A stretch of DNA of 63,252 nucleotides, filler included, from Perkinsus chesapeaki ATCC PRA-425 (lineage: Eukaryota > Protista > Perkinsozoa): assembly GCA_013115145.1 (NCBI GenBank). It is 7 parts of 7 records of this genome, joined end to end, with 100 filler letters (N's around TTAATTAATTAA, not from the genome) between each part and the next. Parts side by side here need not be neighbours in the genome. Positions count along the whole stretch, not along the records: positions 1 to 31,245 come from JAAPAO010000423.1; 6 more parts are not named here. The stretch is one strand, 5' to 3'. Below the pieces are notes generated by a model. The model had not been told where the DNA came from. It was given only the letters and a program-made list of their open reading frames with translations, and ran no database searches. A program made the position numbers and the translations under genes. Shown piece by piece: positions 2,297 through 31,245 of the stretch; position 1 is the stretch's first letter; the number at the start of each line of letters is the position of its first letter.

Positions 2297-5200
2297 TCAC
2301 CTATCTCGTGGATTGTTAGTTTTCATTCTCAACTCCACCACGAAATATCTTCTCTCTTGATCGACATAAAGTGGAACTCCGATAGTATCAAGTTCTGATG
2401 AAATATATGCAATAGAAATCCTACAAAAGCTCTTACCGGGGTTCGAACCCTGGACCTTCGCGTCATGTTGTTCAGGAGTCCATTGAAGCGTAAGTGGCGG
2501 TACAGCCGAGAGAGGAGGGTCTTGTTGGTTTACATCCATCAATGTGAATGTAGACGGATCAATGCGGCACCCCTGAGATTAGAAGAGTTCTATCAGCACG
2601 CATGCGCAAGCCTAAGACAACCTCAAGATAAAGATTCTCAACAACTATTGCTGTGGCAGTGGTGGTGGATTTATCTGCTTCCCTTCCTTCTTCTTTTCTT
2701 GTAAAATAACTTTTCAATTTCAATGATGTATCCAGCGGGACCTGATGAAATACAGGACCGAGAACAAGACGTCGTTAGGGATCAGGTAATGATTAACGGA
2801 ATCTTGCAGTGACAAACAGGCTGTGTCTGAAGTACTCGTTGTTTACCTTTAACATTTTGGCAGTCTGTTGCTTTAAAGCATTGAGGAGTACTATTGGATT
2901 AATAACCTGTCCGAAGTCGAGGGGTTCATCGATGGGGAAGTCGGTATGAGTAATACGAGTCAACCACCGTGTACGTAGAGATACATAACGAGTGGAGAGA
3001 GCCTAACAATGTCGATCACGTGATCGATTTCGATAAAGATACTTTCAGGTATCTTAGCGGCTCATCGGGGGCAAACTCCCAATGGGAACTCCACATTGGA
3101 GGTACCTCTTGTTTTATGAGACTCTCGGCCACACCTAGAATGAGAAAGTTAGAGTCACTGCGCCACGAAATTCGGTACTGATTATCTCGGAGGTCAGTGG
3201 GGAGCGAGATGTCGTCGGATTTGCGCAAAATCCTCTGAGCGCTTTCAAATGTCGATCAACCTGAGTATCTTCAGGTCGACCATGCACGATGCAAAACAGG
3301 TTGCCCACTGTGTCATATATTTGTGTCACCATCAGAACATCCATTTTAACACAGGCGACTGTTGGCGAATCTGTTGGTTCGGCGACACTCAACGGAGTCG
3401 AGTCAGCTTTCTGATGCTCAACTGTCCGTGTCGACCAGAATGACCAGAGGACTTCCATCTCCTAAAGATCAAATATGCGAAGGAGAAGAGGCGAAATAAA
3501 CAAGTGATTGTTACGAAGCCCGGCAGAAGCAAGAGGAGACGGATAATGTCCAAGAAACGTCCCGAGTTAGGCTCTGTACTGATATTTATTATTATAACTA
3601 TGCCATATGATGGATAGGGCGTTATTCCATACCAGCCTGTCTTATCGATACGTTGTTGGACACAAGGGGGCAGTTAGAAATAAGTGAGAAATACTATAAC
3701 ATGCTGTGGAGTTTCATAGAGGAAAAACAATTCTTACTATTTTCCAAAGCTTTATATCAATGGACTGCTGCTGATGCTGTTGGTTGAAAGATGAGCTCCC
3801 AGGGTGGACCCAACTTGAGTTCAAGATACGTATCTGGCTCACAACCTAAAAGATACTTTTCGAGGTTGATTAATGACATCTTGAGCAGCTCACTCGCTGA
3901 CTATTTACTATTTGTAGATTCCTATCAGCGTTTGCTGCCATCCCCAAATCAATATGATCGGCACCAGACCGAGGCTCGTGAATGAGATGCGATTTGAATG
4001 TATCTGACAGACCCCAGTTCAAATCCCATGTACCTGACATTTCTTGGACTAACCCAGACTAGTAGAAGCTGGCAGATGGAAAGGTAGGAGGGAGGACCCA
4101 TTATCGATCGCCTGATCGATTAAAAATAGCGAATATACTGACATAGGAATCCTACCTGCTGCGCAAAGATACCTTTAACATATTGCCGTATTAACCTCAA
4201 ATCAAAATGGTTATCCACTCGGCATCCATAAATCGCATTCTCAAGAATTCCTCGAAGTGTTTGCCATTCCACTGGAATGAAAAGGTCCCGGGTTCTAATC
4301 CCAGAGCCGACATTTTACCGTTTTCCTTATTAATAACCTGTAGAGCCGACTCACAAGCACTTTTCAGATCAGCGGTAGAGAAGCCATAATCCTTCGACCA
4401 TCCCTGAAAGGCTTGAACATAAGGTTAGATAAAGTTACGATAGATCGCTTACCTGTGGGATGAAGGCACATCTCACTTGGATGATAGCGTGAAAGCAAGC
4501 ACACATGAATATAACCTAAAATGGATACTTTAACATACAATAGAGTTAAAAAATGGGATAATAATAATCAATAATAATAAACTGAGGGGATAAATACGAC
4601 GATTAACCGCTTGTTCATGCTAGCCGCATTATGTGAGTTTTATACTTGGTTGATGGATATGGACATCATTCATTAGAGGCTGCATTTTCGTGGCGCGTGA
4701 CAGAATGCACCTGCGATCTTCTAACTTCTCCTCCGGATCCGAACCACGCCCCATCCCAGTCCTCGCAGATCCTCATAATGTTATTCCTGATTCCTGGTGG
4801 AGATTCATACGCCACTTTTAAAGATGATTCCAGTAATGTTACGGGGAAGTTATCTCGAGGCTCAGTGGTAAGCCAACACCTGCAAGGATTTGGCACATGA
4901 GCTAATAAGGATAATGTGAGACCTGAAATCTTTGTGGACTTCCGCCGTGCTCTTCTCAAGTTGAGCTTCAATTTTGGCTGCCCATCCGAGCGCCAGATGA
5001 AGATTCATAATAAGCACCCAATGGCCTTCTTTAATGCCCTCTAATCGAAGCGCGACCCAGGTTCGAACCCGAGCACTGACATCATTTACTTTGCAAAGAT
5101 CCCAAAACTTCCTGCTCATTTCCTCCACCAATAGCCACTGCAACCAGGTTATGCCTGGAATAACTTCACGCGCCACGAAATATTCGGCAACTACCCCTTA

Positions 5201-8200
5201 GCAGCTGCATGTTGTGCAATCTCTTTAGTTGGATCTGCTCCCGGTGTGACTATGAATAATATTGGTCGAATGGTGTTACGGGATGAAGCAGCAACATCAT
5301 CAGATAAGAATGTAAGTGATGTATTGGAAGAGGATGCCGATGACACAGTTAAGGACTGAGAAAAGTCGCTACCCGGATTTGAACCGGGGTTGTCACGGCC
5401 ACAACGTGACGTCCTAACCACTAGACGATAGCGACTTAGTACCCACCTGAGTACCTCTGAGGAGAACTTAGCGAGTGCGGATTCAAGCCGATCGGGTCGC
5501 AATGCTTGGACGATGAGAACTTTCTGGAAGGACGTTAGTTTCAAGGCCACTGACTGTGGGAACTTCTCCTCGCATGCATCCTCCTATGAATATTCAACAT
5601 AACATACTTTCTATCTAACCAGCTTCGAGCTAAGATACTCACTTGCATCCACTCTTGCCACAAACTTGAGGTCTCCATTTCAGCCTTTTCATTCAATCCC
5701 GGCGATGCCGAAATTAAATTAATGAGATGATCTTTCCTATCTGTTGGGCACCAGACCCTATGTCCCTCCTTTAAAGTTTCCTTCACATCGTCACGCGCCA
5801 CGAAATTCCCCGTGAACAACCTCCACTCGTCCTCTGTAATCGATCTAGCTGCAAATGTTTTCGACATCAATATGGCAAACGTAAGTCTGATAGCAACTCG
5901 CTCATGAGTTTCGTGGCGCGTGAAGTTACCTGTCATGCTTGAATAGCGCCCTGTTGACATAGCCCAGAACATTGGCTTTCATTCTCATCATCATTTCACC
6001 CAGACGCGCTTCAATTTGATCTGACGGTTGCTCAACGGTTGTGTCTGAGAGTTCACATTTTTTAGGTGGGGAGGCGATGATGAACTTACCAATGAGTGAA
6101 TCTCGGAAGATGTGGATGAATTCGGTTAGAGAAAAACGATACATCGGCCTAGTATCCAGGCTTCAAGCATGCAAGATGCGCAGTAGGTTACCCAATCCTC
6201 GCCATATCCAACATAAGCATGAAGAGTTCCGCCCCTTCCACGGCGACAGCTCGGAACATCTAACAGCTTCGCAATCGAACGTTTCGACTCTCTATTTACA
6301 TTGCGTTGTTTATCAAGATCGTCTTGCAATCTTATGCTCTCTTGCAAACTCTCAACGATACTCAATGCACTCGTTTTAGTCTTTTCAAGACTTTCCATTA
6401 ATTTTTCATTCTCCAAAATGTTACCCTCAACAGCCGACAACTGCCGCAACAAATCTTCCTCAACTTCCATCAACCGATTCTGAGCAAGCCTCCAAATCGA
6501 TCATGTGATCGATTACAACCCACCTTGAGAGTATCTTCTTTCTCTATCAATTCCCCTCGTCTCTTTTCTAGCTCTGGCCGTTCATGACCAATAACAATTC
6601 CTACCAACTGTGATACCCATTGCATCCCTAACTACGCCCCACCTAGCAATTGGTGCATTAGTCCTTGCCGTGTTGCTGTGAAATTAACGCCAATAAGGAG
6701 ACTTCGCTCATTTGGCGCCATTGTCTCAAAAACTCCAGCATCCCGACTTGTAAGGAGAAGTCGAAAATCATCAGAATAATCGACGCTTCGCTCCGCCAGT
6801 TGAACGACTCTTCTTGACCCAATCAATTGGTAATCTTTTCTCAAGATAGGCAAGAGAACCGGTGAGATATTTCGATCGACGCCGAGATTAACCATAAGTG
6901 TTTTACCAAACCTCAGAGACAGTTCGAGTGTGTGCAGGAATGTCGAATCATTCTGATCAACGCACACCAATGATGTACCACTATCGGACAGGTGCCGGGC
7001 AAGCCATCCAAATGCCTTCTGAGTTGCATCGGCAATTAATGGCACTGCCGCCTAGCAGAGTGAGGTGTGCAATATTGGCAACGAATTTCGGTATACCTTT
7101 TCACTCTTGAGAACGACTAATGCATTTTCTGCTGAGAGTTCGTCTCCTCCAAGACCTTGGCTTTTGAACTTCATCAGCTCGGACTCTTTTCCGCTAAATT
7201 TCTTGAATGAGAATCCCTCCATTGTTATGGATTTAGTTGCAAGCTTTGAGCTCCAATCAGAAAGATACTCTGTACGAGCAATTTCCGAGAGTGCTCCGAG
7301 GTAAACCATAAATGCAGCAGCCAACATGCTTTCGACAGGCAGCCGATCTGAGGCATCAGATCTTGGGACGAGTTAGACTTGGGGTGCCCAGGTGAGTGAG
7401 AATAACAGTGAAATCATGTAATACGTATAAATGTAATGAGCCATAGAAGAATATATAAACGTTATGCTCACCTATCTTGCTGGATATTTCAGCTACCTCT
7501 TTCTCCCATCGCGTCTTCTCGTCCCCAAGACCTTCGAGAAGACCAACTGCCTTATTCAAAGTTCCACGTGCATGTTCGACCCCTTGACGGAGCCCCTCAG
7601 CCTCTCCTGAAATACGATACTTCATTGCATCAAACAAACTTCGATTGTGCTCGGAATTTGGGCTTGACGGTTAAACACGACACTCATTTTCCGGGATTGT
7701 TGGAACAGCTCGAGTTCTACAGAACATTTACCATAACAGGAACGAATTGTTGCTGAGCTCCACAGATGATTGTGGCCATAACGGCTCGGAAGGTTTGCGC
7801 AAGCTGATTAACGAATTTGTGCACACCTTCAGCGAACCTTCGCGTGTCCAGCTCATCGTCGCCTGTACCACCCAGGTTGTCAGATGGTGCGATGTCGCAT
7901 TAACTTCATTCACAAGAAGTCTTCTTGCGAATGGCCGACACCCGCGTCGCGGCGGTGCAAAACGGTGACATGTTAGAGCAACGCGTAGCAACCAATCGTT
8001 GAATTCCTTAAGTGAACGTAAGTTTTTTTGGGATCCACGGAGCTTTTACTCTTCATGGCTGGAGATTTTAAACTTCTTCTCAAGTAGCACGTCTTCGAAA
8101 GGTGAGCTTGTTGTTGAGGATGGGTCGGCCGTAGGCTATATCGCCAACTCAGGCGTTTCAGCCGGCCTACCATCCAGTGGTTACACCACATCCCCTCCCT

Positions 8201-14200: not shown

Positions 14201-17200
14201 CGCCACCTACCTTTTTTAAACCCTCATCAATTGCCGCTTCAATATGACATAAAACATTCCTCACCAACCCCATCAGTGTTACTTCTACACCAAGATCATC
14301 TCCAAGAGAAACATGCTCCTTTATCCAGTCAATACACCTGTGAATCTTGCAATCTTACCAATTCTTGCATTTCCTCAACGCTACTTGTAAAAGATGGACT
14401 CAAACCAATCCTCTAGCTCAATAAGATTAACTCCATTGAGTCTATCTTCGTTTGATTTTATCCATTTATTTACCACATGTTCGACCGGGACTCCTCCCTC
14501 GGAGAGGTAAACCATTCCTGAAAATACCCCTTCATTGCGGCGGCGGTGGCCTTCAGACCATCTGTTGAATATTACCCTATTACCCGAATGGCTATAATGA
14601 TTAATGAAAATTACAAGTATACAACTTGACCAACAGAAATCATATTTACATGCCGATTGCCGCTGATGAAATTAATAACTTTTTGTTAGGCTCGACTTAG
14701 TCGATAACATCATTATAAGAATCTCGGAATACTAATAACCGATGTGAAATGTACTCAAGCGGCGGAAGCGGCGGCGGAAGCGCATATGGTACAACTTACC
14801 AAGTCGGGAGACTGTCGCCGGGGAGGCAAAGGCGAGAGTGTCGGTCTCAAAGATGAAATTGATGTTATCATGGAATCGAATACGCTCTCCGTTGGGGAGG
14901 GTTAATAATCGATTATCATCTGAGAGAACAGGATGAGGAAAAATCTGGAAAAATTGGGGGGAATTTCACGAAAATTACGAATTTCAGTTTTTCCCGTAAA
15001 TTCGCTTACCAAGGACCGAGTTGAGGGACTCAATCCATTCGGGATCAACATCACCATCACATACGATCCAACACATTGTCTCCACAGGCTCTTTACTAAC
15101 CTAAAGTAAAACGTCACGCGCCACTAAATTAAAGCCTAACCACCTGACGGGCTGCTGCACTAATAACTCCATCTGACCATTCCCTCGTATCGACATTCAA
15201 CTTCCCCAAAAGATGCTGTCGAGAGATACTCTTTGGATTCACCGTGTGCACGCGTGCAACTTTACCAGTGCGCATGATTCCTTCGACAAGACTTCGCCAA
15301 ATGACCGTCTTACCACTTCCACTCGGCCCAACAATGCTCACACCAATTCGCTGTCTACAAGCCTCGTAAAGTTGTAATATTTTCTCCACTTGATTTCCAT
15401 CAATAGTCATTTGTCGACTCTTTAATGAATCTTTCACGCACCTTTCAACCTCGCCATAGTCAACCTCGTCACTTTCAACCCCCGGGAAAATATCTTTCAA
15501 TAGCGAGAAAAATCGCTGAGCATCTTCGGAGGAGAGCTTCGCCGAGATTCCCATTCGAGCCGACAGGACCAATACCCTGCACTCTTGTTCGTGGTCAATC
15601 GACCCACCGTCGCGGTGCAGTAATTTGCCAGCCAGAAGGAGAACGCTTTTCAGTGCTCGAAGGCCCCAATCGTAATGCTGCTGACGGGACAGCAGTTGCG
15701 AGCTCAAAATGAATAGAGAGACTATTCGACCAGAGAGCAACTTAGCGGAGCGAAAGCCTTGGGAGAATAATATGACCTGAAAACAATAGCAAAGAAAATA
15801 CAAGTACAAGTCTATTGGGGGAAATAAACCAAATGACATTGAGATGCTCGGAGAGGTGAAGTTAACAACAACAACAACCGGGTCAGGTGGAATGGTGTCC
15901 CAGGATCGCAAAAACTAATCTGTATACTTTTAGAAAAACCAGCCATAATATAAACCAACTTTCGTTGTAAACTTATCGAATCTTTGCCAGCTTTGAGCCA
16001 TTAGCACTCGCCAAAAGTATTGTAGAAAAATGGTAGCCATGGGATTCGAACCAGCGACACTAAGTCGGGAGAATTTCCTACTCATTTATCAGGATTGGCG
16101 TTTTAAAGCGCTGAATTTCAGCGGCTGAAAATAAATGATTCATTACAGTTCTCCACATACTTTTGGAGAGCTGTTTAATGATATTCAACTTAATAAAAAA
16201 TCACTTCTGGTTTCTAGTAATATTATTAATAGATATATTCAATCTTTATTTACCCCTTACCTCGGCAATAAGCTCATTGTCTGGAACTGCCATCGCGACT
16301 GGTCTAAATAATTGTTTTAAATTGTCCGGTAGTTTTTGCCGTCCACCGTATCCTTTACTGGCTGGGTTCATCGTTACAAATACACCAGCGTTGTGATTCA
16401 CTTTAACATCTGAAGGTAAGCCGACTAAATCTCAAACTTTCCTGAAGAAACCTCCACGATTGATCTAATAAATGACAGTAGTGAGGTGGACTGAGCCGAG
16501 AATCGAACCCGGGACCTCGGGCACCCGAAGCACGAATCATACCACTAGACCAGACAGCCTATTAATACGTTCAATGTAGCAGAAAAGATGCCATGAATGG
16601 GAAGGCCGCACAGTTAAGAATCCTGTTGAGCTTTCGTATGTCATACTCATTTTATGAAAAGGAATAATGTCATGTTGCTCATTGGGAATTGTTATCATTT
16701 TACCAGCAAAACTGTACGGTGAAACATACAAATAATTAAACGAGTAAATGATCTGCCTTGCCAAAAATGTGTTCCGCGAAGATCAAATAATTTCCCTGAT
16801 GAGACGAACCTTGTCCTTGGACAGTTGCAATTTTCAAACAATCAAAAGCGTCGTCAATTGAGTCACAATCATGAGCGTTGATGATGAGAACTCACTGAGG
16901 CCGAGGAGATCCACAAAGGAAAGCTTCTTTTTAATTGCTGATTGAATTAATTCAATCTGCTGGGAAATAGCTGACATCTGTTCTTCCAATAATCGATTGA
17001 ATTCATCAAAACACCCCCAAGCTCCACACCTGAGAGGAGGAGAAGGAGGAGGAGGTTCAGCTTATCGGAACTTTGTGAATTTTTTACTTCAAAAGCTTTC
17101 GGAAATTGCGATCATCGTGAAAGACGTAAAATGCGTCGAGGAAAAATAAAAAACCTATTTCTTAGCGGAGCGAAGCTTACCTAAGTAATCCAATAAATAT

Positions 17201-20200
17201 CCTTGTCATACTTTTATAATCTATACCTTCATCACAGTTAAATACCAACACTTGACGACCCAACCAACTTCCTAATGCTTTAACAGATTCAGTCTTACCT
17301 AGATAGTAGTAAAGATACCCCAACGACTGCGCACTATGAAGAATCTCACCGGTCCCAGCAGGCCCATAAGGATTTCCTCCGTACCCAAGATGCATTCCAT
17401 GCATTAAAGTCATGTAACATTTATCAGTGAGGGGAGTGTGGACGAGCTTTGGAGAGTTACCCTGAGGAATGATGAAAGTTCGGAAAATAATCGACAAACC
17501 TGAACAGAAAAATAAATGATATCTGAATACAAATCTGGGAAGTTCTCAAGACTCTCGAATCTTTTCATGTTGCCGATTTTTAAGAGAGCAACTTTTTAAG
17601 AATTTAACAACTAAAGTTCTGCAACTGTTTTGCGTCGAGTAGATGACCATCACCTGGTATTCAAACGAGTATGACTGCCGACAAGCCAGCATCTCAACAT
17701 GCGCATCGCCATTCGTGGAAGAGTAGAACCGTAACTGTTTATACCTGAATATATCAAAGTCAAGGTCGACCTAAAGATACTCCTACCATCCCCAATCTTT
17801 CCTCTTGATAACCCTTTTATCGACAATCTCTTCAATAATGGATGCATTATGAATAACATCCATTATCAAACCCTCCAGCTTCGCTCCGCTAAGATTATCT
17901 GCATCTTTTTGCATTTTCGTAAGGTCCCCTAATCTTCCCATTAATTTAAAATGAATATCTTTCATTGACTTTCCACTTTCCAGACAACCTTCAACCTCCG
18001 CAGTGAATCCAACAGCCTCCCCAAGGCACAGAATCTGTCCCGGTAAATCGAGCAAGTCACCGCCTTTGTAATTAGCAAGAAGAATCTTCAGAGTGCGTAC
18101 CATGCACGCATCAAGCTCACTTAGCCATACCTCAATCGATCGCGTGATCGATATTGCATCTATGAGTTTAACTTCTTCTCCCATCGAACTCACCATTGCT
18201 GTTATTCGATTGTTTCCATCGATTTCAACTTTATAAATTCCCGCAAACAAATTTTTCAAATGGCCTTGAACAACTCCAGAATCGTCACTGCGCCCCAAAA
18301 TCTCCAAAAGATCTTCATCGCCGATGAAGTAGAGCCTCGGACAAGTCAACCTCTTTTCTTCAAGATACTCGTTCAACGCTTTCTGGCATCGATCGATTTG
18401 ATCAGCCATCGAATTCAACTCTGAAACTTTACACTTTTCCCGATAGCCGGTCAATAAGCTGCTAACAGCACGATTGCTCTTCGACGAGTATGTTGAATTG
18501 ACAAAGTGTCTGAAGGCTTTGTCGACTCGCGAGAATCTTTCTTTCTCGGATGGTAAAGCTCCACGTCCGAGGACAGGCTCGAGATAGACCCACTTCCGCT
18601 GCACCTGATAGAAAACAGAAAAGATTGACTTCTGAGAATCCAACCGACGTGAGCGACAATGTACCAAAGTTGCACAATCTAACAGCCCTCATTAGCATCG
18701 TTATGTGGCATTTTTATTCAATGCCATAATAGGTCTAGTAACAATACCGATAATTCTTGCCCTATTCCCCCAAGCCTCACTTTATTAAGTAGTTGTAAAA
18801 TTTGAGCCAATGCATTTAACTTGTCCTCAATTCTTTCAACTTCATCTTTAAATCCATAATAAAACTTCGACTCCTTCAACGATAAACATAAGCTTTGTTG
18901 TTCACTCAATCCACTTAATAAATCTTGCCATTCTTTTATAATATCCAACCTCACTCCATCACATGTTATATATTCTGACACCTCTAGCTGTGTCGCATCA
19001 AACCAACAATTAAGCTCGGATACAGCTTCCCGAAGAGTCACCTCTCCAACGGCGCGCGCCACTAATTCCCGAATAGTTTTTTCGTTTTTAAGGATTTCAT
19101 CACAATTTTCGAGGATAGATGAAACCGTTAGATTCTCCAATCGAGTGTCTTTGGGTAGTCCAATGATAGAAAAGAGAATCTGAAAGCAAAAAAGTCACGC
19201 GCCACGAAATTACTGATAAGGAAATCGATCGCGTGATCGACTTGGACTTACTCTCCAGTGATCCTTCTCGAATGCCTCGCCCGTTATACATGATTTTATA
19301 ACAGGGTAAGTATTTTCCAGCGCGCCACAAAACTTCATCATCATTGCGAGCACCGAAGTGGGTCTCGAGCCCCCAGAGCATTCTCGGATCTGATCAGTTA
19401 CGGTCAAGTAATTTCGCCCAATTCAATCCGAATCAAATTTCTCGAAAAATTCCTGGTAAAAATTTCCTAATTTTCGCCAAAATTTTTTCGGAAACTTCCG
19501 GCAGGTTCATCAAATCTGATACAAGGTCTCAAATTGCTCGGAAAATTTCTGTTATGAGACGATGATTTCCTGGGCAAGTTGTCGGTCACCTTGGGAATCC
19601 ATTCGTCGATGAATCGAGCAAGTTTGGAGACATTTGGTCGAAAGTCCAACCAGAGCTGCTCGCCGAGCTCGAACAAGGACGAACGAAATTCGGCAAAGAC
19701 TCTCCAAGAAGAAATGGCGGCGGCTATCTCGTCATTAACAATAGAATAACCTTCAATCTGAAATGGGATGAGAAAAACGTCACGCGCCATGAAATTGTAC
19801 TTGTGGCTGATCCAAGCCGAATTCAGCACAGTCACTGTAGAGAGCATCTGGACAGAGGCAATTCTTGCGCGCCACGAAACTACTTCCTACCTGCCGATTT
19901 CTGTACCTCTGACCAGTCGTTCTGCCATTCTTCCATTCGTTGACAAATTTCCATTAAGCCTTCCGAAAGTGGGAAATCATGTTCATCAACAATCGGTTTT
20001 AAAGCCTAAATCGATCAAACCTCGCTCAACCTAAAGATACTTCTCACCTTCCATCGAGATTCGTATCTTTCAACTTCATTTTTAACCTCCAAAATCCGAC
20101 TGCCGATTTGTTCTTTCAATTTCTTCTTCAATTCCTCCACAACATTTCCGAAACTTTCTATTTTCTCCGTCACTGCGCCACATAATTCTCGTACTTCTTT

Positions 20201-23200
20201 CAAATCTATCACGCCCCCTCCAGAGCTCTCGACTAATCTGGCTCGTCCGGCAATCGCGTCCAGTTTTTGATTTATTTCCGGCAGCTCAATCGCCAACTTG
20301 CGCACTTCAAGCTCGGATTCGGATATTCCTTTCACATTTTGTGGCGCAGCGGTCATTTTCCCGAGAGAATCCTGCAACTTATCGACAAGACTTTTAACTT
20401 GCTCATTCAACCGTCGTTTCAGTGTTATAACCAATTCAAAGGAAAACCTAGAATCTTAGGTTGATGCGTGCAAGATACGAAATATCTTAGCTTACCTGTC
20501 TATCTGCTCCTCCACAACTGTCTTCAATATAACAGTATGAAGCACCATACAATCGACTTTAACAAAATCAGGTAGTCTTTCCAATTCTTTTTTCTTTTTC
20601 CTCATCCCCTTTAAATTATCTTCCCAAACACTCTCCTCTTCATTTTCCATACCTTCCACTATTTCCAATAATTTCTGCTCTCCGAGGCCCCCCAATACCT
20701 GACAGTTCATTGCCATGTAGAACGACGATAGAAATCGAATTTTAATATTCTATCATTTTTCCGCCGAAAATCGTCCCACAAAGCAGCTCTTTGATACATT
20801 GAAAAACTGGGCTTTTCTATCTCCATTTTCGAGGGTGTAAAGACCTGCTGGAATCCTTCCGAGTTTTCCTGCCGGCCGGCCTGTTCAACAAACTTTTCGG
20901 ACTATGCAATCATATTTCCCGATTGTTATTGCTGAAAGATAGAAGCTCCCTTGGAGAAGGTCGCCGGTTCGATCCACGGTGAGGGTATTTTTACCCCCCA
21001 ATGAGAGACTTTAGTTTTTTCTTCTTCCAACTTGTCCAACATTTCCTCGCCTCGACTGTAAACAATCGCCAATGCTTTTTTAACCTCAGAAGAATCTAAG
21101 AGAAGCATCCTCTTGAGGTATGAAATGCGCGCTTCAAGCTAAGATACCCTCGGTTAGCTTCCTGTAGATCTCAGGTGCTCCTCTGAAGCCTGCAATGCTC
21201 TCAATTCGCCCCACAAATTTTCCAACTTCTCGGTAATATTTCTGATCAACCCAAAATATATCAAATCGATCGCGCGATCGATTATTACTTTTCTAACCTC
21301 CTCCACTGTCGGCTTCAATGTCACTTCTTTTCGACTCACAATCACATCGACGCGTATCTTTAGGTCAACTTTCAAGCACCCGATGAGAATCTACAACCTC
21401 CGGAATGGTCTTATTAAATCCGAGCAGCCCTCTCATCAATTGGACTTCGACAATCGCTTTCAGTTGACGATCCAAATGAGCTCTCCAAGGCTTAGTCAAC
21501 GAATCCTATCAAAGGCGTATCTTTTGGAGTTATGAAAAGCCAGCTTGAACCTCCTTATCAGCTCCAACCCTTTCGGCCATTATGTCCACTTTCCTCTGTA
21601 ACTCCATGAGCCTCATCTTCCACATGTCATATTGACGGAGGATACACAACGAAGATAAATTAAGCAAACCACATAGGATCTGAAAGAGCGAGTTCATCAT
21701 CATCATCAATCCTCAAGTATAACTTATTGTGATAACTAAATGATCAAGTAAGGAAATACGGATATGGCATCTGAATCCTACATTCAACCATTAATGGCAA
21801 TTTCAAAGGATAGTCCAATTCTTGTTCGACGACACGATACTATTTCTGACTCAACTACAGTTTCCTACGGCATGAAGATGATGATCCGGAAATGAAGGGC
21901 AAGGTGGATGAAAATAATATTTGAGACTATCATCACTGTCGGTGCTCAGGCCCAACAACCAATCTCACTTCCGACCCAGCCACCCTCCGAAGAATAATGA
22001 TAATTGTCCTGATAAAAGACACGCTATTACGAGACATAGTACGATGTATACTTCGACGGTACTTGGACTCTGCCCTGGATACTCCACACAAAAAAATGTC
22101 GACAAGAGCATTCTCCATCCTAGCTGCCCCCCCAACTACTACTACTTCTGCATGTGCATTCCTCAACATCTCATTTATCCCTTTTAACCTTCTCCTGCCC
22201 TCCTCCGCTCGATCGGTGAATGTCTTCAATTGCTCCAAAGTATTCCAATTCGTATTAGATGACTTCGTGAGTGTCTCCTCAAATGCCAATGCTTCGTTCA
22301 ACAGCATCGGTTTTTGAAATGGTAGAAGGTCCAATGATAGACTATTATAAAATATACAAACTTCTCGCAATGTCACCGCAAACTTAAAGTATCTTTCCCA
22401 TACTTCAACCTCACCCGCTAGATTCTTCGGAATGGCATACCCAGCATTTTCGAATGCCCTCGCCTCCTTGATAGCTACCAGAAGCCTTCCGTCATAATTA
22501 ACATTCAAATCTCCGCTGGCTATAGATTTGATGGAAACTACTGCAGCTGATACGTCCAAGCGGACCGCCGAAAGACTTTCGCACCATTTCTTAAAAAGCG
22601 CATCTTTCCTCGCTTTAATTCGCCTCAATAATTCCCGACACTCATTTGCCACACCACTCGCTCCCTCCAAATCACGGAGGAATCCTGAGTTGGGAGCAAC
22701 TGCCGACAACATCTGTTCGACTTCTCCCCGCGCCACACTAAGGTTCTTCAAATCAGAAATGAAATCGATTGACTTTTCCCGTCCTAGATTATCTTTCATC
22801 TCTGAAATATGCCTCTTCAACATCATCATTATCGTCTCCCTTTCACTTCGTAATGCATCCTTCATCACAGAAAACTCCATCATGGCCCCAAAACGACCAG
22901 ACACTCCACGAATAGTCGCCACGACATCCCCCCCGACAGTTGACGAGCTCAGCTGCCGAGATATCACAGGTTTCAACCTCAATACGATCGGCTCGGCCTT
23001 CCTCGCATATTGGATGAAGAAGCTTCCCCATTGAGCATCCGAATATTCACTAATACCGAAGACACTCCCACGAGTGTTAATGTTGAGTAAATCCTCAGCA
23101 AGGCTTTCCACTTCGGCCGGAGTGATCGAAGATGAGCTGTCGGATGCTATCAGTCGTAGTTGTTCTAGTTGTTGACGAATTGAATTGATACAACGAATTC

Positions 23201-25264
23201 GGTCGGCCAAACGAATGGGAGAGTTGAGTACCTTAAATGGGCTGTGCCGAGAATTGAACTCGGGACCTCTCGCACCCTAAGCGAGAATCATACCACTAGA
23301 CCACACAGCCGATGAGAAAGACCACCTCTACAAACCCTGCTTCACCTCTTTCATATATTCCCTTCCCAACAGACTCCCATCTTGAACACTCTCCACCCAT
23401 CTGTCGAGGACCTGATGACGCAATACGAAAAAGCGCGCGCCCAGTTAATCGATTTTCGCCCAACCCACCTTGACCGCTTCTCGAAGTACAATGGACGTTG
23501 ATTTATCTTGGTGGAGCCGAAAGATATCTTTGAGGTCAATTAAGCGGCGACTGACTTCCGAGCAGACTTTGAACGATATGACAGTTAAAAGTCTGATAAA
23601 AGGACAAATCGATCAAATGGGACGCATTCGACCTCCAAAAATATCTTACCGTTTCATTCTTTTAGCTGGATAAGGAGGATCTATATTCTCATGAAGGTTC
23701 TCCAATATCATCAAAGTCTCATCTATCTCACCATAAATGTTCGACAGTGGCTGTTGTTGTTGTTGCTGCTGAGGGAGGAGAACTGAAATTTATTCAACTA
23801 TAATCATGACAACAATCGCTACCACGAATACGACTACACACCAACATCGAGATGCTCCTCGCAACTCATAGTGAATCATCGAAATCTAAGCACGCTGCTA
23901 TTGCCAAGCAAATGATCAATACGAATCAACAACATTATCACACCCACTAACCGAGTCATCTCTCACCTCCATTTGATATATTAAATATTAAAGGTGCATT
24001 GGTCGAACACTTCGCAAACTCCTCCGCGATTGTCGATGCCTGATAAGTGCTATTCTTCAATATCCTTCCTATCAACTTCCCTATCAATGGCTATGGACAT
24101 TGCTAATCGTGTCATGCTTATTTTCACTCTATTAACACAATCCCTAGCTTCTTGCTACATCATCATCACGAATCTAGATGATGATGATGATGCCGCCCTG
24201 GCCTATTCTCATTATCTTCCTCTTCAATATTAACCCCCTTAAAGACTCATCATACCGACTTTTTCTCAACGTATCTCGAAATTATTGACACCCCCTCCGT
24301 CACCCTTCTGCCACCGTTTCCCGATTCCTTCATTCCTCTCCAAAAAGCAGCCTCATCATACGGGATAATCACCTATTCAGAAGTCTTGCTAATCTTACCA
24401 AATCTTGCATTTCCTCAACGCCTCCTTACATTGTCGGTAACCTCCTCGTTGTAATTCATAACATCCGATGATCCTCTCTGCAGTGATGCTTCCAAACCAG
24501 CTCTCAGCGATTCACTAAAAGCCCCAAAAATTTCAGAAAAATAGAATTTCCAAAAATTCTTCTACATCGATCCTCCGACGTCCGTGTCCCCCAGTAACTG
24601 CGGAAATAAGGCTCCCCCAATTTCTGGGCGCGTGACTCTGCCTCACCTTCGAGTATACTTCTCTAAGAATGTTATCCAACCCTTGCCTTGCCCCTCTCCC
24701 GTCGATTGTGACTGTCATGACGCTTCTCGTCATCATTGTTGTTGCCGAGGACAGCTCACCCATACCAGTTTTGATGAACACCACCACGGTGCTGCTACCA
24801 GCTGAGAATGGTTAAAATAATCAAACAACAAATATTCCCCAAACCTTCAAGAATTGGGACTATTTGATCGTAAATGCTTGTCAATGTGACATTCCTGAGC
24901 GTCCCTCCATTGCCTGTTTGACTTTCATAGGCGAACAGGACCTGACAAGCAGATAAGCAGCAGCCTTCTAACAAAAGGACACCCCCGACAGATCGATATC
25001 TTTTCCAGTTCGCGCGAACATCTCCGAAAGTCACTTTTCCGATGTTCACCTTAGTGTTTATGTCATCCATAAATCTCTCGAGTTCAGTATTAGACTCCGG
25101 GTTGGACCTGCTGCAAACGTCACTCGCCACAAAATACTATTTAACCTGAAGGTAGCTCTCTCTCTTTGGCTAATACCCAAAAGCGCCATGCATGCTTCAA
25201 CGATGAACTCTTTACGAGGATCAGGTTGAGTATGATAATCAAATGAAGCGTTGTAGTCAGCCAT
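2297..25264 (-). CDS. DYNC2H1: Cytoplasmic dynein-2 heavy chain (retrograde IFT motor), dozens of exons; 3' end approximate
   Basis: Collinear exon peptides: N-term [11 protein letters not shown]; tail [29 protein letters not shown]; QRKWVYLEP and [15 protein letters not shown]; AAA1 GPAGTG|KTESVK and VFNCDEG; AAA2 GPSGSGKT; AAA3 GPEGSGK; AAA4 GRSGCGRR (dynein-2-type degenerate P-loop); stalk [14 protein letters not shown]; QALRPDRL; [10 protein letters not shown]; C-term [11 protein letters not shown]. Confidence 0.95.
5364..5435 (-). tRNA. tRNA-His(GTG) inside a ~90-nt dynein intron
   Basis: GTCGCTA/TAGCGAC acceptor, CGTC/GACG D-stem, TCACG-TTGTGGC-CGTGA anticodon arm, CCCGG-TTCAAAT-CCGGG T-arm, followed by TTTT. 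Confidence 0.9.
16488..16559 (-). pseudogene. Degenerate tRNA-Pro(CGG) in a dynein intron
   Basis: Colinear with the intact Pro tRNA at 23239-23310, but with 2 acceptor-stem mismatches and 1 anticodon-stem mismatch. A- and B-boxes intact. Confidence 0.65.
23239..23310 (-). tRNA. tRNA-Pro(AGG) inside a ~94-nt dynein intron
   Basis: GGCTGTG/CACAGCC acceptor, CTCGC-TTAGGGT-GCGAG anticodon arm, CCGAG-TTCAATT-CTCGG T-arm; all three fully paired. Confidence 0.92.
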
Positions 25265-25594
25265 ACGAGATACTCGGAAAACCAAGCTACAAAGTATCTT
25301 ACCTGCGTCAACCTGGGATACTTTCACAATAATCCCATGATTTTTAAGAACCCAACTCATCTCATTATCACATTACTATGCGATTACATTGGAAATAAAT
25401 CGCTAGATCGAACAACTAAGAATACCATACACCTGATTAGTATCTTGCAAGGTTCAAGCTAAGATAGTAATTAACTATAAACACAAGGCAACGATAATTA
25501 GCTGAAATTAACCTAGATCAGTCTCGGAAACACTCCAAAGATTTCGCAAACCTCCATCGCCGCTGCTGCCGATGATGATGATCGTTTAGCCGAT

Positions 25595-26825
25595 TTAGTT
25601 GCCACCGACAACCTGAGAAAATGAAAGGTAATAGAAGACGGAATAAACAATTAAAACAAACAAGTCTAAAAACACCAACCGACATTAGCACTCATCAACA
25701 CTGTCAACCACCGGGGGTATGTGAAGATATAAATGATAGTGGCATATTCGGAACAGAGGACACTTGAAACAGCATGAATGCATCAATTCCATCCCAACAA
25801 CTTTAATAAATTACAAAATATAATAGATATTTTGACGAGAAGAATGACAAGCATTATACAACAAAGCTGCTGCTGCTGCTTTTGCTGCTTACCGTCTTCA
25901 ACTGAGAGAGCCACCTCATATATTCCCTTTGCTCCTTATCAAGTGCAGTAGCATCGATGAAATCACAGACTGCATCAGTTAAGCCAACTTCGGCAAGATA
26001 CTCATCGAATGCCTCTTGCATATTATCATCCAAATCTTCAAACTCTGGGCCATTGTAGCTCGAAGCGGATTCCTTCTCAGCAACAGACGTGAATGCACGG
26101 CAGTTACCAATTACATAACGATGACCCTCACCGGCTGCTGTACCTAACAAATAGAGGGATCACCAATAACAGTGACCAGACGGAAAATTCGAAATATACC
26201 AAACATTAATACGGTAAAATGTTCGAAATAACAAGACATTGATAAAGGAGCTTACTGCAGTAAAATATGAGACCCTGACCAGCCTTGTTCTCAACGGTGA
26301 CAGTGAAATCTGTGGCTTCAGCGGGCTCCATAGCATCCTCACCTTGACCATCCTCACCTGATAAATAAATATCAAAGATACCTTATAGGTTGACTCACTA
26401 CCTTCCATGCCATCGAATCCAGCATCATTAAATGGGCTTGTCAGCTGCCATTCGACAACAGCAGTTTTATCACCAGTAAGTTGGCGAGTGATGCTCATGT
26501 TGACATCACCTTCGACTTCATCAAACTTCCAGGTTTGGTCGGCCAGGAATTGCTTGCAGATGGCCGGTTGCTCATATCTGATATTAAACTAATATAACAT
26601 TTATTAAATTAACTTACGATTCCTTCTCGTGCTGCAACTCAGAGGCGAGGGACTTGCTCAATTTGGCGCAGGCAGGGCTGGAAAATGCCACGGAAGACAT
26701 TCGCATGACACCTTAATAGTCAATAATAGAGTAATACCAAACGGCTGCTTACCTAATGATCGAGCCGCAATAGCTCTGGTGGCAACAACAGGAGCGTATT
26801 TGACGGCAACACGAGAGATCATCAT
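25595..26825 (-). CDS. Mitochondrial acidic glycoprotein (MAM33/p32/C1QBP family), multi-exon
   Basis: SYNGPEFEDLDDNMQEAFDEYLAEVGLTDAVCDFIDATALDKEQREYMRWL is the family C-terminal signature. Basic N-terminal targeting-like peptide MISRVAVKYAPVVATRAIAARSL. Confidence 0.85.
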
Positions 26826-29483
26826 AATTAATAAAAATGTGAAGCTGAAGAAATGATGAGAGATCATAGGTCAAGAAGATCGCATTGAACATTCATCATA
26901 CACTTCAATGATCTGATGAGATTGCCTTCGATCATCTGATGGCCAGGCTCATCGGAGACGTCGCATCACTCAAGGATGAACCACCAAAATTAACGTTGTC
27001 ACAGATGTGCGCGCGTACATATGATATATGCGCACGCCCTGCCGATCGATTAGTTATTGTGTCTCGCTTTTGCTGTATCTAAGGTTGAAGCATGCAAGAT
27101 ACTAGGGAGGTTGAGAATGATTCACTGAAGTCCGTGTATTATCTTAGACTGACTTTCGGGTTAAATGCGTTGGGGCAAGAGTGGGCGCGGAATGGTATAT
27201 TAGGTCAGCGAATGGCGCAGCGCAAGATACGCGATATATCACCGTATATCACTAACTTCTTAGCTTGCCGCGTGCAAGATACCCGGCAGGTTGGTCCGTC
27301 TACCATGTCCTCCCGTCCACGTCAACTGATATCCACCGAAGAATACCTTGGTAAGACCCTTTCCTCCTCTGACTTGCATTTCTTTTTAGATTTCTTCGAC
27401 ACCACCGATACCGAGACCACCTCGGATTCTCCTACAATCCATATCCAATCTCGAACATTGAAATCTTCCGACCAATTGAAGTAACACTTTACCTCTATAG
27501 TGCTCATCTACAATCCCTTTTGATTGTATAGTAATGTCATCCAATCGTAAGTTGAACAAAGAGGTTATCGTAATTTATCATCAGTACAGTGTAGTTTATG
27601 ATAAAATATTGTTTTTCACTCACCGACAGAGACTCATTCGAAAGCATTTTATATCGGCTTTATGGTTGTCAAACCGAAAACATCAAACAGACTATTCAAC
27701 CTACTAAACTGATGACAAGTTGTCAAGTTTAGGTTGGATGAAGCTGATTGCAGATTGGCAGTTGAGAGGGTCCTCGAAGCGGTGAGAAGGTTTAGTAATT
27801 TCGTGGCGAGTGACGATTAAGATACTTTGGATATGTCTGCAGCTTCACAGGAGTGGTCAAACTCAAGGGTCAGCTCGTTTGTTGAAGATTATCAACGTAG
27901 CGCAATCTGCTGGGGATTATGGATCCATCATAGAGGCCTATGTCCGACATGTTTTGTATCATGCATGCTCCAACCTACGATACCATTCATAGGCTGGCCC
28001 GTATGAGCTGCTAAACACCCTTTCAAAGGAGATGCCTTTGCTTTTCCAAGCCATTCATTTTCAATTTAACTTTAACGATCCAACTTGGCGACATAAGTTA
28101 AAGTAATCCTACCTCGGATCGAACCTGGGCCATTCGATTGCTATTTCAGTCGCGCCCTTGAAGCCAGAGAGGCTGTTTTGGAATTCGGCCTTCAGCCAGC
28201 GGGATATTCGGGTAGGTATAGGAGATATGTCGTGAAGTATGATATATCATTACACCCTTACATTTTAGATGTCCCAACAGCACCTATCAGGAACAATTCA
28301 CGAAGACGACCGGAAACTGCCAGATATCGAACGAATCAGAACACAGAAGTGAGGGGGGGGGGGGGTTGGGTGACAAATATTAAGATTATTGATCCTCTCA
28401 GCTGCACCATCATCGGTGTTATAGATTTCGTCGTCCAACTAGTGCCCCTCTTTCAAAGGCTTATCCAACAACAGAATCACGTTATCCATGACTCCTCCTC
28501 CTCCTTGACTTAGTGTTGGTTAATATAAGGGAACGGTCTATTGCGATGTTTTATCAGGTTGCGGTCTCCGAAGCCGTAGACCTTGTTAGATTTTTACAGT
28601 GCGATTCCTTACTGTAGCATTTCACAGCCCCCCCGCGCTGGCTTGACACTTTAAGAGTAGATACCATGAAAAAATGTTAATATTTAATCGATTTGGCTTG
28701 TCGTTCTAATAACGTTACTCCAGTAATATTACTATTAAATGGTCCAAGTTAACTTTACTGAAGAGGTTGAACTAGAACGAGTTCATGTAAGATGGTTGAT
28801 TCGGAAGTTGGACGGGATACCGCTCATGCTACCTTGTATCAGAATCTCAGCCCACATAATCGACAAGAATACTTGGAACGAGTCTTCGCCAAATTTGATA
28901 CTGTAAGCTTGTGGTATCATAGGTTGAAGCGTGCAAGATACGCAGTACCTTGAGAACCAACACTTTATCAGGACGGTAGTGGAGAGATCGAGTATCCGGA
29001 GCTTCTTGCTGCCATGCGATTTCTTGGCATTCAAACAAGCTCCTTCATTGTTAAGAAGTTGTTCTCGGATATGGATCAGGTAGATGTTCCATGCCGGAAT
29101 CGAACCCGATATCTTTCGATTGCTAGGATAAGTCGGGTACAATCGACGTTGAAGAGTTTATAGAATTCTTCTTCAAAGTTAAGAAGTTGGATGATCTAAA
29201 AGAAGAGCTCAGCCATAGGAGGAAGCAATATATATTTCGTCATAGGATATTAAACATGTAATGAAAATGCCTCGCCCCCGCCTCCTCCTCCCCCGCCTAA
29301 GACAACTCTTCCAAATTGGCCCAATCTGAGCCCCTCTATCGAGGGGCCCAATTCCCCTTCATATGTTATCAGGAAACGGCTTAGAATTGCTACTATTTCT
29401 TGTCGGGGAGCACTAATTAAAGGGCTTCACGACTACTTGAACAGTTTATTCTCCGACCCACATCGGTCGTCGTATCGATTGTT

Positions 29484-29825
29484 GTGGATCAATTTAGTGC
29501 CCCTCTTTTGGGACCTTCTCTTGTCAGGTATATTTTGGTATTATTTTTTACAGTATTCATTCTGGTTATTATTTACTTATCGGATGTAGCAACATCTGGT
29601 GATTCAGCCATAGAAGGAACACAAGCAACGTACTTCAATAATTTCATGGCGCGTGACGATTCATACACCACCTACAGGTCATCCTCCTCCTCCTCGTCCT
29701 CACAAGTGACCAGCAAATCCTCCTCTACTTCTCCTGTTGTCGTAGCCATATTTGCCCTCAGTGGCATTTTGCTCATCACCATCGCCTACGTGGTCATTGG
29801 CCCTATCATAATGCTCAAGTATTAA
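29484..29825 (+). CDS. Small membrane protein with Ser-rich linker, intron-containing
   Basis: Two hydrophobic segments and a poly-Ser run; GT-AG intron 29630-29677 carries motif A. Confidence 0.3.
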   Translation: MDQFSAPLLGPSLVRYILVLFFTVFILVIIYLSDVATSGDSAIEGTQATYFNNFMARDDSYTTYRSSSSSSSSQVTSKSSSTSPVVVAIFALSGILLITIAYVVIGPIIMLKY

Positions 29826-30755
29826 CAGAAATCTACCTTTCTTTCGTGAATCAATTTTCGAAGGTACAAACGAAAGCAAGACGAGAAGAATGGCAAGACA
29901 CAGTATCTAAACAGGCAGCGGTCCATAGGTGGGCAATTCCACCTTTATTTCGGGCATGTCCCGTTTGTTGATATTATCTTTAAGCAGCAGATTCACGCTA
30001 CCCTAGCTACTTTGACAGAGCTAACTCATGGCAAGTAAAAGGGTTTGATGGTGGGAATGATGATAGTAAGTTTAATGCCAGCACACGAGTTCGATCCCTG
30101 GATGGGGCATTTAGTGTCAGCGGGAGGAGGACGATTATCAAGATTGAAGAGTCAGGAAAGCATACGAGGAAGTGACAAGGTTATAATAAAAGGGAATCTT
30201 TTTTGGACGGGAAATTTCGGAAAATTCCACGAATTGTCTTTGTTGTTTTTTTTAAATTCTGCATGCCGCCAATGGTCGGTGAGGGTGGTCCAGATATGGG
30301 ATGATTTCACCGAGATATTACTTCTCTGTGGATCAGTGGATACGTGTGGAGTTTGAAGTCGTAGGGAGTACTTATGACGTGGATGTCGTCGCGCGCCACA
30401 AAATGAGTTTTTATGTTTTCTTCAGTTACGGAGGTCATTTATCAGGCAAGCATCTCAGGTGTCATTGGCAGGAAATAATGTTTTGCCTCAACTTGAAATT
30501 CAACGTAATCTTATTGGCCGAAAATAAATCAATTATACAACCTTTAGCGTTTACCGGATTTTACCACAATAAGCAAGAAGATGAGGATAAGGCCTTTGTT
30601 GGTCCAACTAGGTGTTTTAACCCACTCAATACTAAAAAATATGCATGGCAACCTCCTGTGTAGTCCTGTTGATCGCCACTCTTGTTTTGAGTTACAGTTG
30701 TCATCAATCCGATCTATTTTGAATCTTGCACGCGTGAACCTGAGATATTTTTCCT

Positions 30756-31070: not shown

Positions 31071-31245
31071 TTATTACAGAAGACGCATCCTATGTTGACC
31101 AGATTTGAGGAACTTGTTAAAAAACAAAGAGAATTTATTCGAAGAAATAATAGGTATTTAAATTGATAAGATTGATGCGTCGCACTGCGCATAAATTGTG
31201 CAATATCTTTGGGCGAGCGATACTTGAAGAGATATCTAATGCATG

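Follow-up and report, generated by a model that had tools for sequence, protein, structure and literature searches.

A 28-bp element with inverted arms and fixed length recurs in ultrashort introns and other non-coding DNA of Perkinsus chesapeaki and is conserved in Perkinsus marinus

Short introns are usually treated as near-neutral spacers, and repeated intron sequences are regarded as young, decaying introners. Perkinsus, a genus with parasites of oysters and clams among its members, forms the sister group of the dinoflagellates. Introns of 39–1622 bp, mostly below 100 bp, have been described for Perkinsus marinus (Zhang et al. 2011), and the introners of Amoebophrya possess inverted repeats of 8–20 nt that join the intron ends, together with direct repeats of 3–5 nt at the boundaries (PMC7789003). 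The DNA considered here is a window of 63,252 nucleotides, filler included, from Perkinsus chesapeaki ATCC PRA-425 (GenBank assembly GCA_013115145.1), of which positions 1 to 31,245 come from record JAAPAO010000423.1; coordinates count along the whole stretch. It carries a cytoplasmic dynein-2 heavy-chain gene on the minus strand, extending from about 25.2 kb down to about 4.1 kb, and in this gene and its neighbours a 28-nt element with the inverted arms GTATCTT and AAGATAC recurs. The element forms a family of fixed length, lies in non-coding DNA independently of orientation, and is conserved in both position and sequence in P. marinus; these points are established. The initial annotation of this DNA, made from the sequence alone, had described such a family, and the observation is now confirmed and strengthened, resting on 31 kb of the window and 34 kb of P. 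marinus sequence.

Introners are among the closest described systems. Those of Amoebophrya (Farhat et al. 2021, PMC7789003) and introners generally (Gozashti et al. 2022, 2025; PMC9860276, PMC12130899) are likewise repeated intron sequences with inverted repeats near their ends. As in Amoebophrya, the lineage is a myzozoan one with a spliced leader of the DinoSL type, and the repeated unit may equal the intron and occurs in many unrelated genes. As with introners generally, similar introns are found in unrelated genes, the similarity reaching a box close to the 5′ splice site. However, Amoebophrya introners mostly use non-canonical splice sites (PMC7789003), whereas the introns described here are canonical GT..AG, the arms measure 5–7 nt and are internal to the intron, at 0–17 nt from its ends, and boundary direct repeats are missing; on these grounds an Amoebophrya-type introner element was rejected. 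In addition, an introner unit comprises about 100 bp or more, compared with 28 bp here (about 42 bp when extended), and the present copies are old, conserved at orthologous sites instead of being strain-specific, with many of them located outside introns.

The excess of copies is readily apparent when the window is searched for GTATC-N18-GATAC. With at most one mismatch, 10 matches are found against 0.68 expected, and none of 100 dinucleotide shuffles reaches 10; four matches, at 25294, 27075, 27956 and 28914, are perfect. At two mismatches the excess becomes weak (21 vs 12 expected), and a pattern combining the core with the arms gives 9 copies at up to five mismatches, against 0.0 expected from mononucleotide shuffles. 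A length histogram was also compiled for the arms GTATCT..AGATAC, with at most one mismatch in total, at every total length from 14 to 60 nt. Six such pairs in the window are 28 nt long (0.09 expected), one is 27 nt long, and every other length accounts for at most one. Because the histogram peaks so sharply at 28 nt, the fixed length claimed by the initial annotation can be considered real. The remainder of its description also holds: every copy given as an example is present, the two copies of unusual length correspond to 3830–3856 (27 nt) and to the degenerate 17751–17780 (30 nt), both orientations occur within the dynein gene, and the 43-nt intron 6149–6191, in which it had placed one copy, is confirmed by homology (...DMARIG^PMYRFSL; here and below a caret marks the splice junction). 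Arm pairs show no excess at other lengths up to 60 nt, and no longer element with the same arms was seen in the 31 + 34 kb. An origin as a fragment of a longer repeat was rejected as well, the repeated unit measuring about 42 nt at most within the window and the P. marinus locus. A metagenome scan for further copies returned one match, which was judged to be due to chance (50% G+C, without any motif family).

The second species is represented by a 34.5-kb locus of P. marinus, part of contig GG680063.1 (L003), collinear with window positions 26.86 kb down to about 3 kb. A first impression that the family is missing from P. marinus was overturned by an arms-only search, which yielded 7 matches in L003 against 0.72 expected; the early searches had remained empty because their patterns held the window-specific core. 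The arm-length histogram of L003 displays the same sharp peak at 28 nt (5 vs 0.05 expected). Four copies occupy the same spot of the same intron in both species (6152 and L003 22759, 5611 and 23301, 20451 and 10072, 3265 and 25242). Within these pairs, 18–21 of the 28 positions are identical (64–75%) with zero indels, and the remainder of the introns differs in length and is not alignable. Over 2,808 aligned codons, the 746 fourfold-degenerate sites are 37% identical, compared with 25% expected from composition, and neutral sequence is consequently near saturation; Jukes–Cantor conversion gives about 1.3 substitutions per site. Since the orthologues have stayed this similar and free of indels while neutral sites approach saturation, the copies are, on this comparison of sequences, under purifying selection.

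Between orthologues, the arms are 82% identical, the CAACCT box 71% and the 8-nt core 50%. The short arm lies in the intron interior, where no part in splicing is known for it, and yet orthologues agree in it at about 79%, a value similar to that of the long-arm end in the alignment described below (A1). Two duplicated or allelic P. marinus copies, 25034 and 30660, are identical at 26 of 28 positions, with both differences in the core, and about 10 of 35 positions differ in their upstream flank. The public P. marinus assembly contains two diverged copies of the dynein 3′ end (L003 24.0–25.6 and 29.6–31.4 kb), with N gaps between them, which are probably haplotypes. Orthology of window copy 3830 with L003 25034 was rejected by alignment, and no recognisable P. 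marinus partner was found for 21120, 20040, 25294 and 25440. The four 28-mer-type introns compared in the L001 overlap are all common to P. marinus.

An ungapped alignment of 21 copies from the two species (A1) gives the consensus GTATCTT-nCAnGCTT-CAACCT-AAGATAC, with G1, A3, T4, C5, T7, G24, A25 and T26 near-invariant. The element is asymmetric: a 7-nt short arm, GTATCTT, is followed by about eight weakly constrained bases and a 13-nt long arm, YRACCTnAGATAC. Its terminal inverted repeats, GTATCTT/AAGATAC, are complementary in 87% of the arm cells, and the closest pair of paralogues is identical at 25 of 28 positions. The window copies, which were gathered with a matrix containing the core, share the core GCAYGCTT. 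Upstream of the short arm there is usually a second box, CAACCT-like or CCGACAT, then 5–6 nt, often TGTTTT, and the long arm is followed by T, often as TAG or TCAG. In sense intronic copies, the extended unit of about 41–43 nt is essentially the entire intron, e.g., GT-AACCT-ACTGC-[28]-TAG at 6149–6191.

Coding sequence holds no strong copy among those checked. The introns that bear the element are ultrashort (42–69 nt), run from GT to AG and are filled for the most part by it; they belong to unrelated genes, namely the dynein gene, an EF-hand gene, a gene at 27.3–28.2 kb and a gene at 3.2 kb. Introns 17745–17786, 20006–20047, 20448–20495 and 21096–21147 are confirmed by alignment with P. marinus. 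Copies sense and antisense to transcription are about equally numerous. The sites outside introns comprise the dynein 5′ region, a divergent 415-bp spacer, the DNA 3′ of the dynein gene and the region upstream of another gene. The long arm is directly followed by TAG or TCAG in 6149–6191, 20448–20495 and 3261–3308. In the flanks of 12 aligned copies, direct repeats are absent and neither TA nor GTAC recurs as a common target; a target-site duplication is therefore not observed.

Splicing in this region is documented by RNA contigs aligned to 25246–31245, in which all ten joints are GT..AG; seven of the introns measure 39–51 nt and three measure 112, 252 and 280 nt. The RNA evidence derives from four runs, three of which are metatranscriptome libraries described as RT-PCR and one of which is labelled with the window's own species; this last run shows the introns. 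A loose end, CCGTAGCCATTTTGGCTCA, is likewise present in the contigs, attached at the AG acceptors 27262 (+), 25667 (−) and 26846 (−), which we take to be a dinoflagellate-type spliced leader; if the RT-PCR libraries are leader-primed, its letters may derive from the primer. The identification is consistent with PMC3101222 and PMC9399869. The idea that the element is a general spliced-leader acceptor signal was rejected, since acceptors 25667 and 26846 lack it. Acceptor 25667 falls within the last intron (25613–25892) of the upstream gene. The coordinates of the copies are collected in Table 1.

Table 1. Copies of the 28-nt element in the window, with their setting and P. marinus counterpart; the last line gives the sites of another intron motif family.
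Position	Strand	Copy	Setting	P. marinus counterpart
3265..3292	−	28 nt, sense to minus-strand gene; box pairs with 3′ junction over 9 bp	inferred 48-nt intron 3261–3308 = GTGGGCAACCTGTTTT + element + TCAG	L003 25242–25269; flanks conserved, TGTTTT before and TCAGGTTGATC after the element
3830..3856	+	27 nt; extra AAGATAC arm adjoins at 3823–3829	intergenic or 3′ region downstream of dynein gene	only a degenerate related stretch
5611..5638	+	28 nt, antisense to dynein gene	starts 4 nt past 5′ splice site of 59-nt intron 5584–5642, homology-confirmed (...WMQ^EDACEEKF)	L003 23301–23328, same intron; GTGA directly before the element in both
6152..6179	−	28 nt, sense to dynein gene	with 12 nt upstream and TAG, whole 43-nt intron 6149–6191	L003 22759–22786, same intron; tblastx high-scoring segment pair spans copy
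17751..17780	+	degenerate, 30 nt, antisense to gene	42-nt intron 17745–17786; in gene direction GTAGGA, then GTATCTTTAGGTCGACC...GATAT	
20011..20040	+	degenerate, antisense to gene	42-nt intron 20006–20047	intron position common, element unrecognisable
20451..20478	−	28 nt, sense to dynein gene	48-nt intron 20448–20495, 3 nt before 3′ splice site	L003 10072–10099 (= L001 2242–2269); 3′ splice site within long arm
21120..21147	+	antisense to gene	52-nt intron 21096–21147; long arm begins exactly at 5′ splice site	orthologous intron of 40 nt, without element
25294..25321	+	28 nt, perfect arms, antisense to dynein gene	dynein 5′ region, downstream of spliced-leader acceptor 25667	region not alignable
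25440..25467	+	28 nt, antisense to dynein gene	dynein 5′ region	
27075..27102	−	28 nt, best consensus	415-bp spacer between head-to-head genes with spliced-leader acceptors 26846 and 27262	
27255..27282	−	degenerate long-arm end	same 415-bp spacer; AG 27262–27263, in CTTAG of the long-arm end (gene strand), is the spliced-leader acceptor of the plus-strand gene; loose end CCGTAGCCATTTTGGCTCA before 27262 in three RNA runs	
27956..27983	+	perfect arms, sense	RNA-confirmed 51-nt GT..AG intron 27942–27992; 14 nt past 5′ and 9 nt before 3′ splice site; joint 27941/27993 in three RNA runs	
28914..28941	−	perfect arms, antisense to EF-hand gene	69-nt intron 28903–28971; frame ...FAKFDT^DGSGEIEYPELL, read from sequence	
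30721..30748	+	two arm mismatches	about 35 nt upstream of likely acceptor (ttatcag^), about 50 nt before ATG 30799; gene context inferred	
4686, 5165, 5790, 5909, 15113, 19194, 19779, 25119, 27799, 29642 and others		TTTCGTGGCGCGTGAC		

The reading favoured here, at somewhat less than even confidence, is that of an old site of fixed geometry, maintained by selection, which a putative dimeric factor probably recognises on DNA. The element would represent an old non-coding module of perkinsozoan genomes, kept by selection, and a sequence-specific factor would contact both of its inverted arms at a set distance. The arm centres lie about 21 bp apart, which would correspond to two turns of B-DNA, and the molecule read would most likely be double-stranded DNA, bound by a dimer. 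We infer protein binding, DNA as its target, and an outcome that may be transcriptional, architectural or other. Copies internal to genes may be confined to introns because the genome is compact. The element would make up most of the ultrashort host intron, with its long arm set against the exon boundary, where it could also serve as sequence next to the splice site, reading GTATCTTAGGT at the 5′ end or, in copies of the opposite orientation, CTAAG..YAG at the 3′ end. Among the three hypotheses of the initial annotation, that of a putative dimeric-factor site agrees best with the data: paralogues, orthologues and the second species all retain the 28-nt length, orientation relative to transcription is irrelevant, and the arms are conserved free of an RNA-helix signature. 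The absence of indels from the element, though the flanking intron takes them, suggests a geometric constraint, and this constraint together with the missing helix signature favours a single factor that would recognise both arms on double-stranded DNA. Furthermore, these introns contain other palindromic families that have likewise been kept in both species, one of them, ATCGATCACGCGATCGAT, unchanged at every base within an exon, an argument for DNA-level elements being widespread in this sequence. DNA-binding domains of the ApiAP2 type are present in Perkinsus, and a conserved AP2 motif reads TGCAT(GCA) (PMC4117751); the resemblance of the window core TTGCAYGC to this motif may be taken as a lead only.

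Several observations weigh against a pure DNA site. The sample consists of one 31-kb window and one 34-kb P. marinus locus, and, of the window copies that could be tested, only about half have been retained in P. marinus. A length of 28 bp is long for a transcription-factor site, and the asymmetry of the element is unexplained by a simple homodimer. The long arm is the exon-nearer end in all six independent introns, lying 0–11 nt from the exon compared with 12–30 nt for the short arm; these distances were counted from the intron sequences (five window introns and 28903–28971), and the P. marinus orthologues were also counted. In sense copies, the repeated unit reaches the 5′ splice site, so that whole introns are paralogous. 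Moreover, five of the eight sense copies show complementarity between the box and the 3′ splice junction of the same intron, and the box varies with the exon start: AACCUA with UAG^GUU, GCCUGG with CUAG^GC, UCGACCUGA with UCAG^GUUGA, and CGACCUC with ^GAGGUCG. A permutation test of this pairing on five independent copies gives p of about 0.03, and among the antisense copies it occurs in only one of nine. Collectively, the polarity of the long arm, the paralogy of whole introns and the box–junction complementarity tie the element to intron structure, which a pure DNA-site model does not predict, and for the same reasons an introner-like splicing module is kept as a strong rival.

This rival is possible though somewhat unlikely. 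It takes the unit to be a minimal intron of about 41–43 nt (GT, the CAACCT/CCGACAT box, 5–6 nt, the 28-mer and YAG) which was copied as DNA into many sites, hence the two orientations and the intergenic copies, and which was kept since nearly every base would serve splicing, whether as 5′ splice-site region, as branch-point-like CTAAG or as a hairpin presenting or masking the 3′ splice site. Apart from the three features just named, it is consistent with the grouping of most short window introns into few sequence families, the 28-mer introns of 42–69 nt being mostly element, and with the 5′ flank CCGACATGTTTT common to two non-orthologous introns, window 27942–27992 and L003 at about 25226. 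One copy also provides a spliced-leader acceptor, and introners with inverted repeats have been described from the related Amoebophrya as well as from other dinoflagellates (PMC7789003, PMC12130899). However, neither near-identical copies (the best pair agreeing at 25 of 28 positions), nor a target-site duplication, nor an empty site was seen, and any gain must be ancient, the four introns of the L001 overlap being common to P. marinus. Known splicing signals account neither for the constancy of the exact 28 nt nor for the conserved short arm in the intron interior, about 6 of the 15 copies lie outside cis-introns, the antisense copies largely lack the box–junction pairing, and neither thermodynamics nor covariation supports an RNA helix of the arms. 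Such a helix is central to a further explanation, considered unlikely, in which an RNA-binding protein would recognise a GUAUCUU/AAGAUAC hairpin, or a switch between it and a box/3′-junction hairpin, and the structure would regulate splicing, the decision for cis-splicing or for trans-splicing to the spliced leader, or the turnover of introns. The transcript reads GUAUCUU...AAGAUAC in either orientation and most arm cells can pair, the box–junction complementarity is also compatible, and a two-sided change, GAAUC/GAUUC (GAATC/GATTC in the DNA), occurs in two independent P. marinus copies; at pair 2–27, double changes are found in three cells, two of them allelic. Nevertheless, the extent of arm pairing is no evidence for a helix because the arms are conserved, and the covariation is not significant, since 31 of 500 shuffles attain its score. 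In an RNA helix, G·U mismatches would be expected to outnumber A·C, whereas the transcribed orientation has 7 G·U against 9 A·C. Minimum-free-energy folds of ten element-bearing introns use the arm helix inconsistently, with z-scores near 0 (−2.2 to +0.8), and a hairpin needs no fixed loop length. The arms thus bear no RNA-helix signature.

A selfish palindromic repeat, as a eukaryotic counterpart of REP/REPIN–RAYT, is quite unlikely. The arms would be the binding sites of a cognate, possibly domesticated, transposase or recombinase, and the copies would be kept uniform by concerted evolution within each species. Arms and length are indeed kept in both species, and core identity is 0.66 among the window paralogues, 0.26 (essentially random) among the P. 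marinus paralogues and 0.50 between orthologues; the homogeneity of the window core is, however, partly an ascertainment effect because of the core-containing matrix. Moreover, no candidate enzyme gene lies in the window, no joints or inversions were seen in the RNA and DNA contigs examined, and positional conservation over saturated synonymous divergence is unusual for selfish repeats. The recombinase site that the initial annotation had proposed likewise receives no positive support, core inversions and joints both being absent from those contigs. Its remaining hypothesis, a TA-duplicating micro-insertion of the kind seen in Paramecium internal eliminated sequences (IESs), or neutral relics of a 22–28-bp micro-transposon, has become highly improbable. 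The inverted termini and the consensus ends G-TA-...-TA-C are as expected, yet copy 27956 leaves the RNA within the larger GT..AG intron 27942–27992 and not at its own TA boundaries, the flanks possess no consistent TA or GTAC target, and the four copies at orthologous P. marinus positions are indel-free. As these orthologues are conserved far above near-saturated synonymous sites, a neutral relic does not fit. The earlier interpretation is thus partly supported: the fixed-spacing recognition site is favoured, and a micro-transposon or IES is rejected for the present copies. Other candidates were discarded as well. No convincing match to the tRNAs compared was obtained for the 28-mer, and U2 snRNA and the start of the P. 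marinus spliced-leader RNA intron (GTAGATATCAGGTCC; primers in PMC3101222) present only 6–8-nt similarities, which are leads only.

A wider proposal, rather doubtful at this stage, is that Perkinsozoa carry "caliper" elements, i.e., an undescribed class of 28-bp fixed-spacing units under purifying selection which, with a few other families of palindromic or tRNA-half-like type, would form the bulk of the ultrashort introns and would be read by a dedicated factor. If true, this factor would couple intron identity to masking of the 3′ splice site and to the choice between cis- and trans-splicing, or to chromatin or transcription architecture, and the introns of the lineage would be retained as housings for modules. 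Here, a repeated 28-bp unit is kept in sequence, length and position across near-saturated divergence and fills most of its host introns. Should this hold genome-wide, it would point to a trans-acting factor and to a new layer of cis-information in the Perkinsus lineage. The element also offers a concrete case for two questions, namely the exaptation of introners and the means by which cis-introns are kept distinct from outrons under spliced-leader trans-splicing. In the literature searched on Perkinsus introns, inverted repeats, palindromic motifs, miniature inverted-repeat transposable elements (MITEs) and short introns, no such element is described, although papers beyond that set are possible. 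Bench testing is feasible, since P. marinus can be edited by a published CRISPR/Cas9 method (PMC8062965).

In most of the approximately 34 short introns compiled, a member of one of a small number of motif families is present. Apart from the 28-mer, the families comprise TTTCGTGGCGCGTGAC, the palindrome ATCGATCRCGYGATCGAT of 18 nt and sequences resembling the 3′ half of tRNAs. The families are also conserved in the orthologous P. marinus introns, and the introns of this lineage consequently give the impression of containers that house conserved modules of DNA or RNA. For TTTCGTGGCGCGTGAC, 14 occurrences stand against 0.2 expected; both orientations are represented, and the motif fills introns of 38–43 nt; in intron 19180–19251, a 24-nt stretch with TTTCGTGGCGCGTGAC is missing from the P. 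marinus orthologue, which constitutes a presence/absence difference. The palindrome recurs in introns (3011, 4103, 6496, 19224 and 21265) and in the dynein exon at 18135–18152, where it encodes ISITRSI; this exonic copy is identical over 25 nt in P. marinus though the surrounding synonymous sites have diverged. Adjoining the palindrome copy 3011–3028, the stretch 3020–3076 reads AAAGATAC-TTTCAG-GTATCTTAG, in which TTTCAG, similar to a 3′ splice site, directly follows an end resembling that of the long arm and is itself directly followed by a new GTATCTTAG. An antisense tRNA 3′ half makes up a whole short intron at 28103–28149, 29080–29126, 4272–4318 and about 20932–20994 (e.g., GTAATCCTACCTCGGATCGAACCTGGGCCATTCGATTGCTATTTCAG), covering the tRNA from the anticodon-loop side to the acceptor with the T-arm between them, and its T-arm part is conserved in the P. 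marinus orthologues. One tRNA-His and two tRNA-Pro genes lie within dynein introns on the strand of the gene (−), at 5363–5436, 16488–16559 and 23239–23310; both tRNA-Pro genes are found at orthologous places in P. marinus (L003 7779–7850 and 14005–14076).

The G+C content of the window is about 43%. The dynein gene was identified from the Pfam domains DHC_N1, DHC_N2, AAA_6, AAA_8 and MT, from homologues named dynein heavy chain 2, and by tblastn with full-length references. The nearest database relative shows 66% amino acid identity over 268 amino acids and groups with proteins of Perkinsus marinus ATCC 50983 when clustered at 90% identity; the organism is accordingly a perkinsozoan akin to P. 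marinus but clearly separate from it. Amoebophrya was discarded as the source, given the canonical splice sites and P. marinus as the nearest relative. Three dynamic-programming versions of automatic dynein gene models, of 3,219 to 5,096 amino acids, skipped exons or read through introns. Only introns backed by RNA, homology or P. marinus alignment were used. The idea of a ciliate genetic code with IESs was discarded, the open-reading-frame statistics under alternative codes being unconvincing and the RNA giving ordinary GT..AG splicing. At 819–1024, a purine-rich tandem repeat with a 15-nt unit, AGAGGGAAAGGGAGG, is present in about 13 copies in a plus-strand open frame, and in P. marinus an 18-copy satellite of 53 nt (L003 1184–2140) lies beside a MAM33-like gene.

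Among the remaining known systems, MITEs are likewise short, non-coding sequences with terminal inverted repeats and many dispersed copies in both orientations. Described MITEs are larger than 28 bp. In contrast to them, the present element exhibits no target-site duplication in the flanks of 12 copies and no longer partner in the 31 + 34 kb, insertion polymorphism was likewise not seen, and its sequence, length and position appear to be under purifying selection across species. The bacterial REP (repetitive extragenic palindromic), BIME and REPIN sequences are abundant imperfect palindromes of 20–40 nt in non-coding transcribed DNA, with species-specific variants and a fixed architecture, which the element may resemble; these are bacterial, whereas the elements described here reside in spliceosomal introns and are not known to be accompanied by a RAYT-like gene. 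A likeness to U12-type introns (5′ splice site RTATCCTT at the very start of the intron, branch site TCCTTAAC 10–20 nt before its 3′ end) is seen in the short arm GTATCTT, which resembles GTATCCTT, and in the branch-like CTAAG of the long arm near the 3′ splice site. However, one C fewer is present, both orientations occur, and the RNA-confirmed intron begins 14 nt upstream of GTATC, which is thus internal to it, so that a U12-type signal was rejected; the minor spliceosome has also been reported absent from alveolates (PMC7789003). A Paramecium-type TA-bounded IES was rejected in turn, the element being present in assembled DNA and copy 27956 being spliced out at other, GT..AG boundaries. By analogy only, formal parallels may be the heptamer-spacer-nonamer recombination signal sequences of V(D)J recombination, CTCF-type sites and palindromic bHLH/bZIP sites, in which two conserved blocks of unequal length are likewise separated by a spacer constrained in length and not in sequence. 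Such sites act regardless of the direction of transcription, a property that the element would appear to share.

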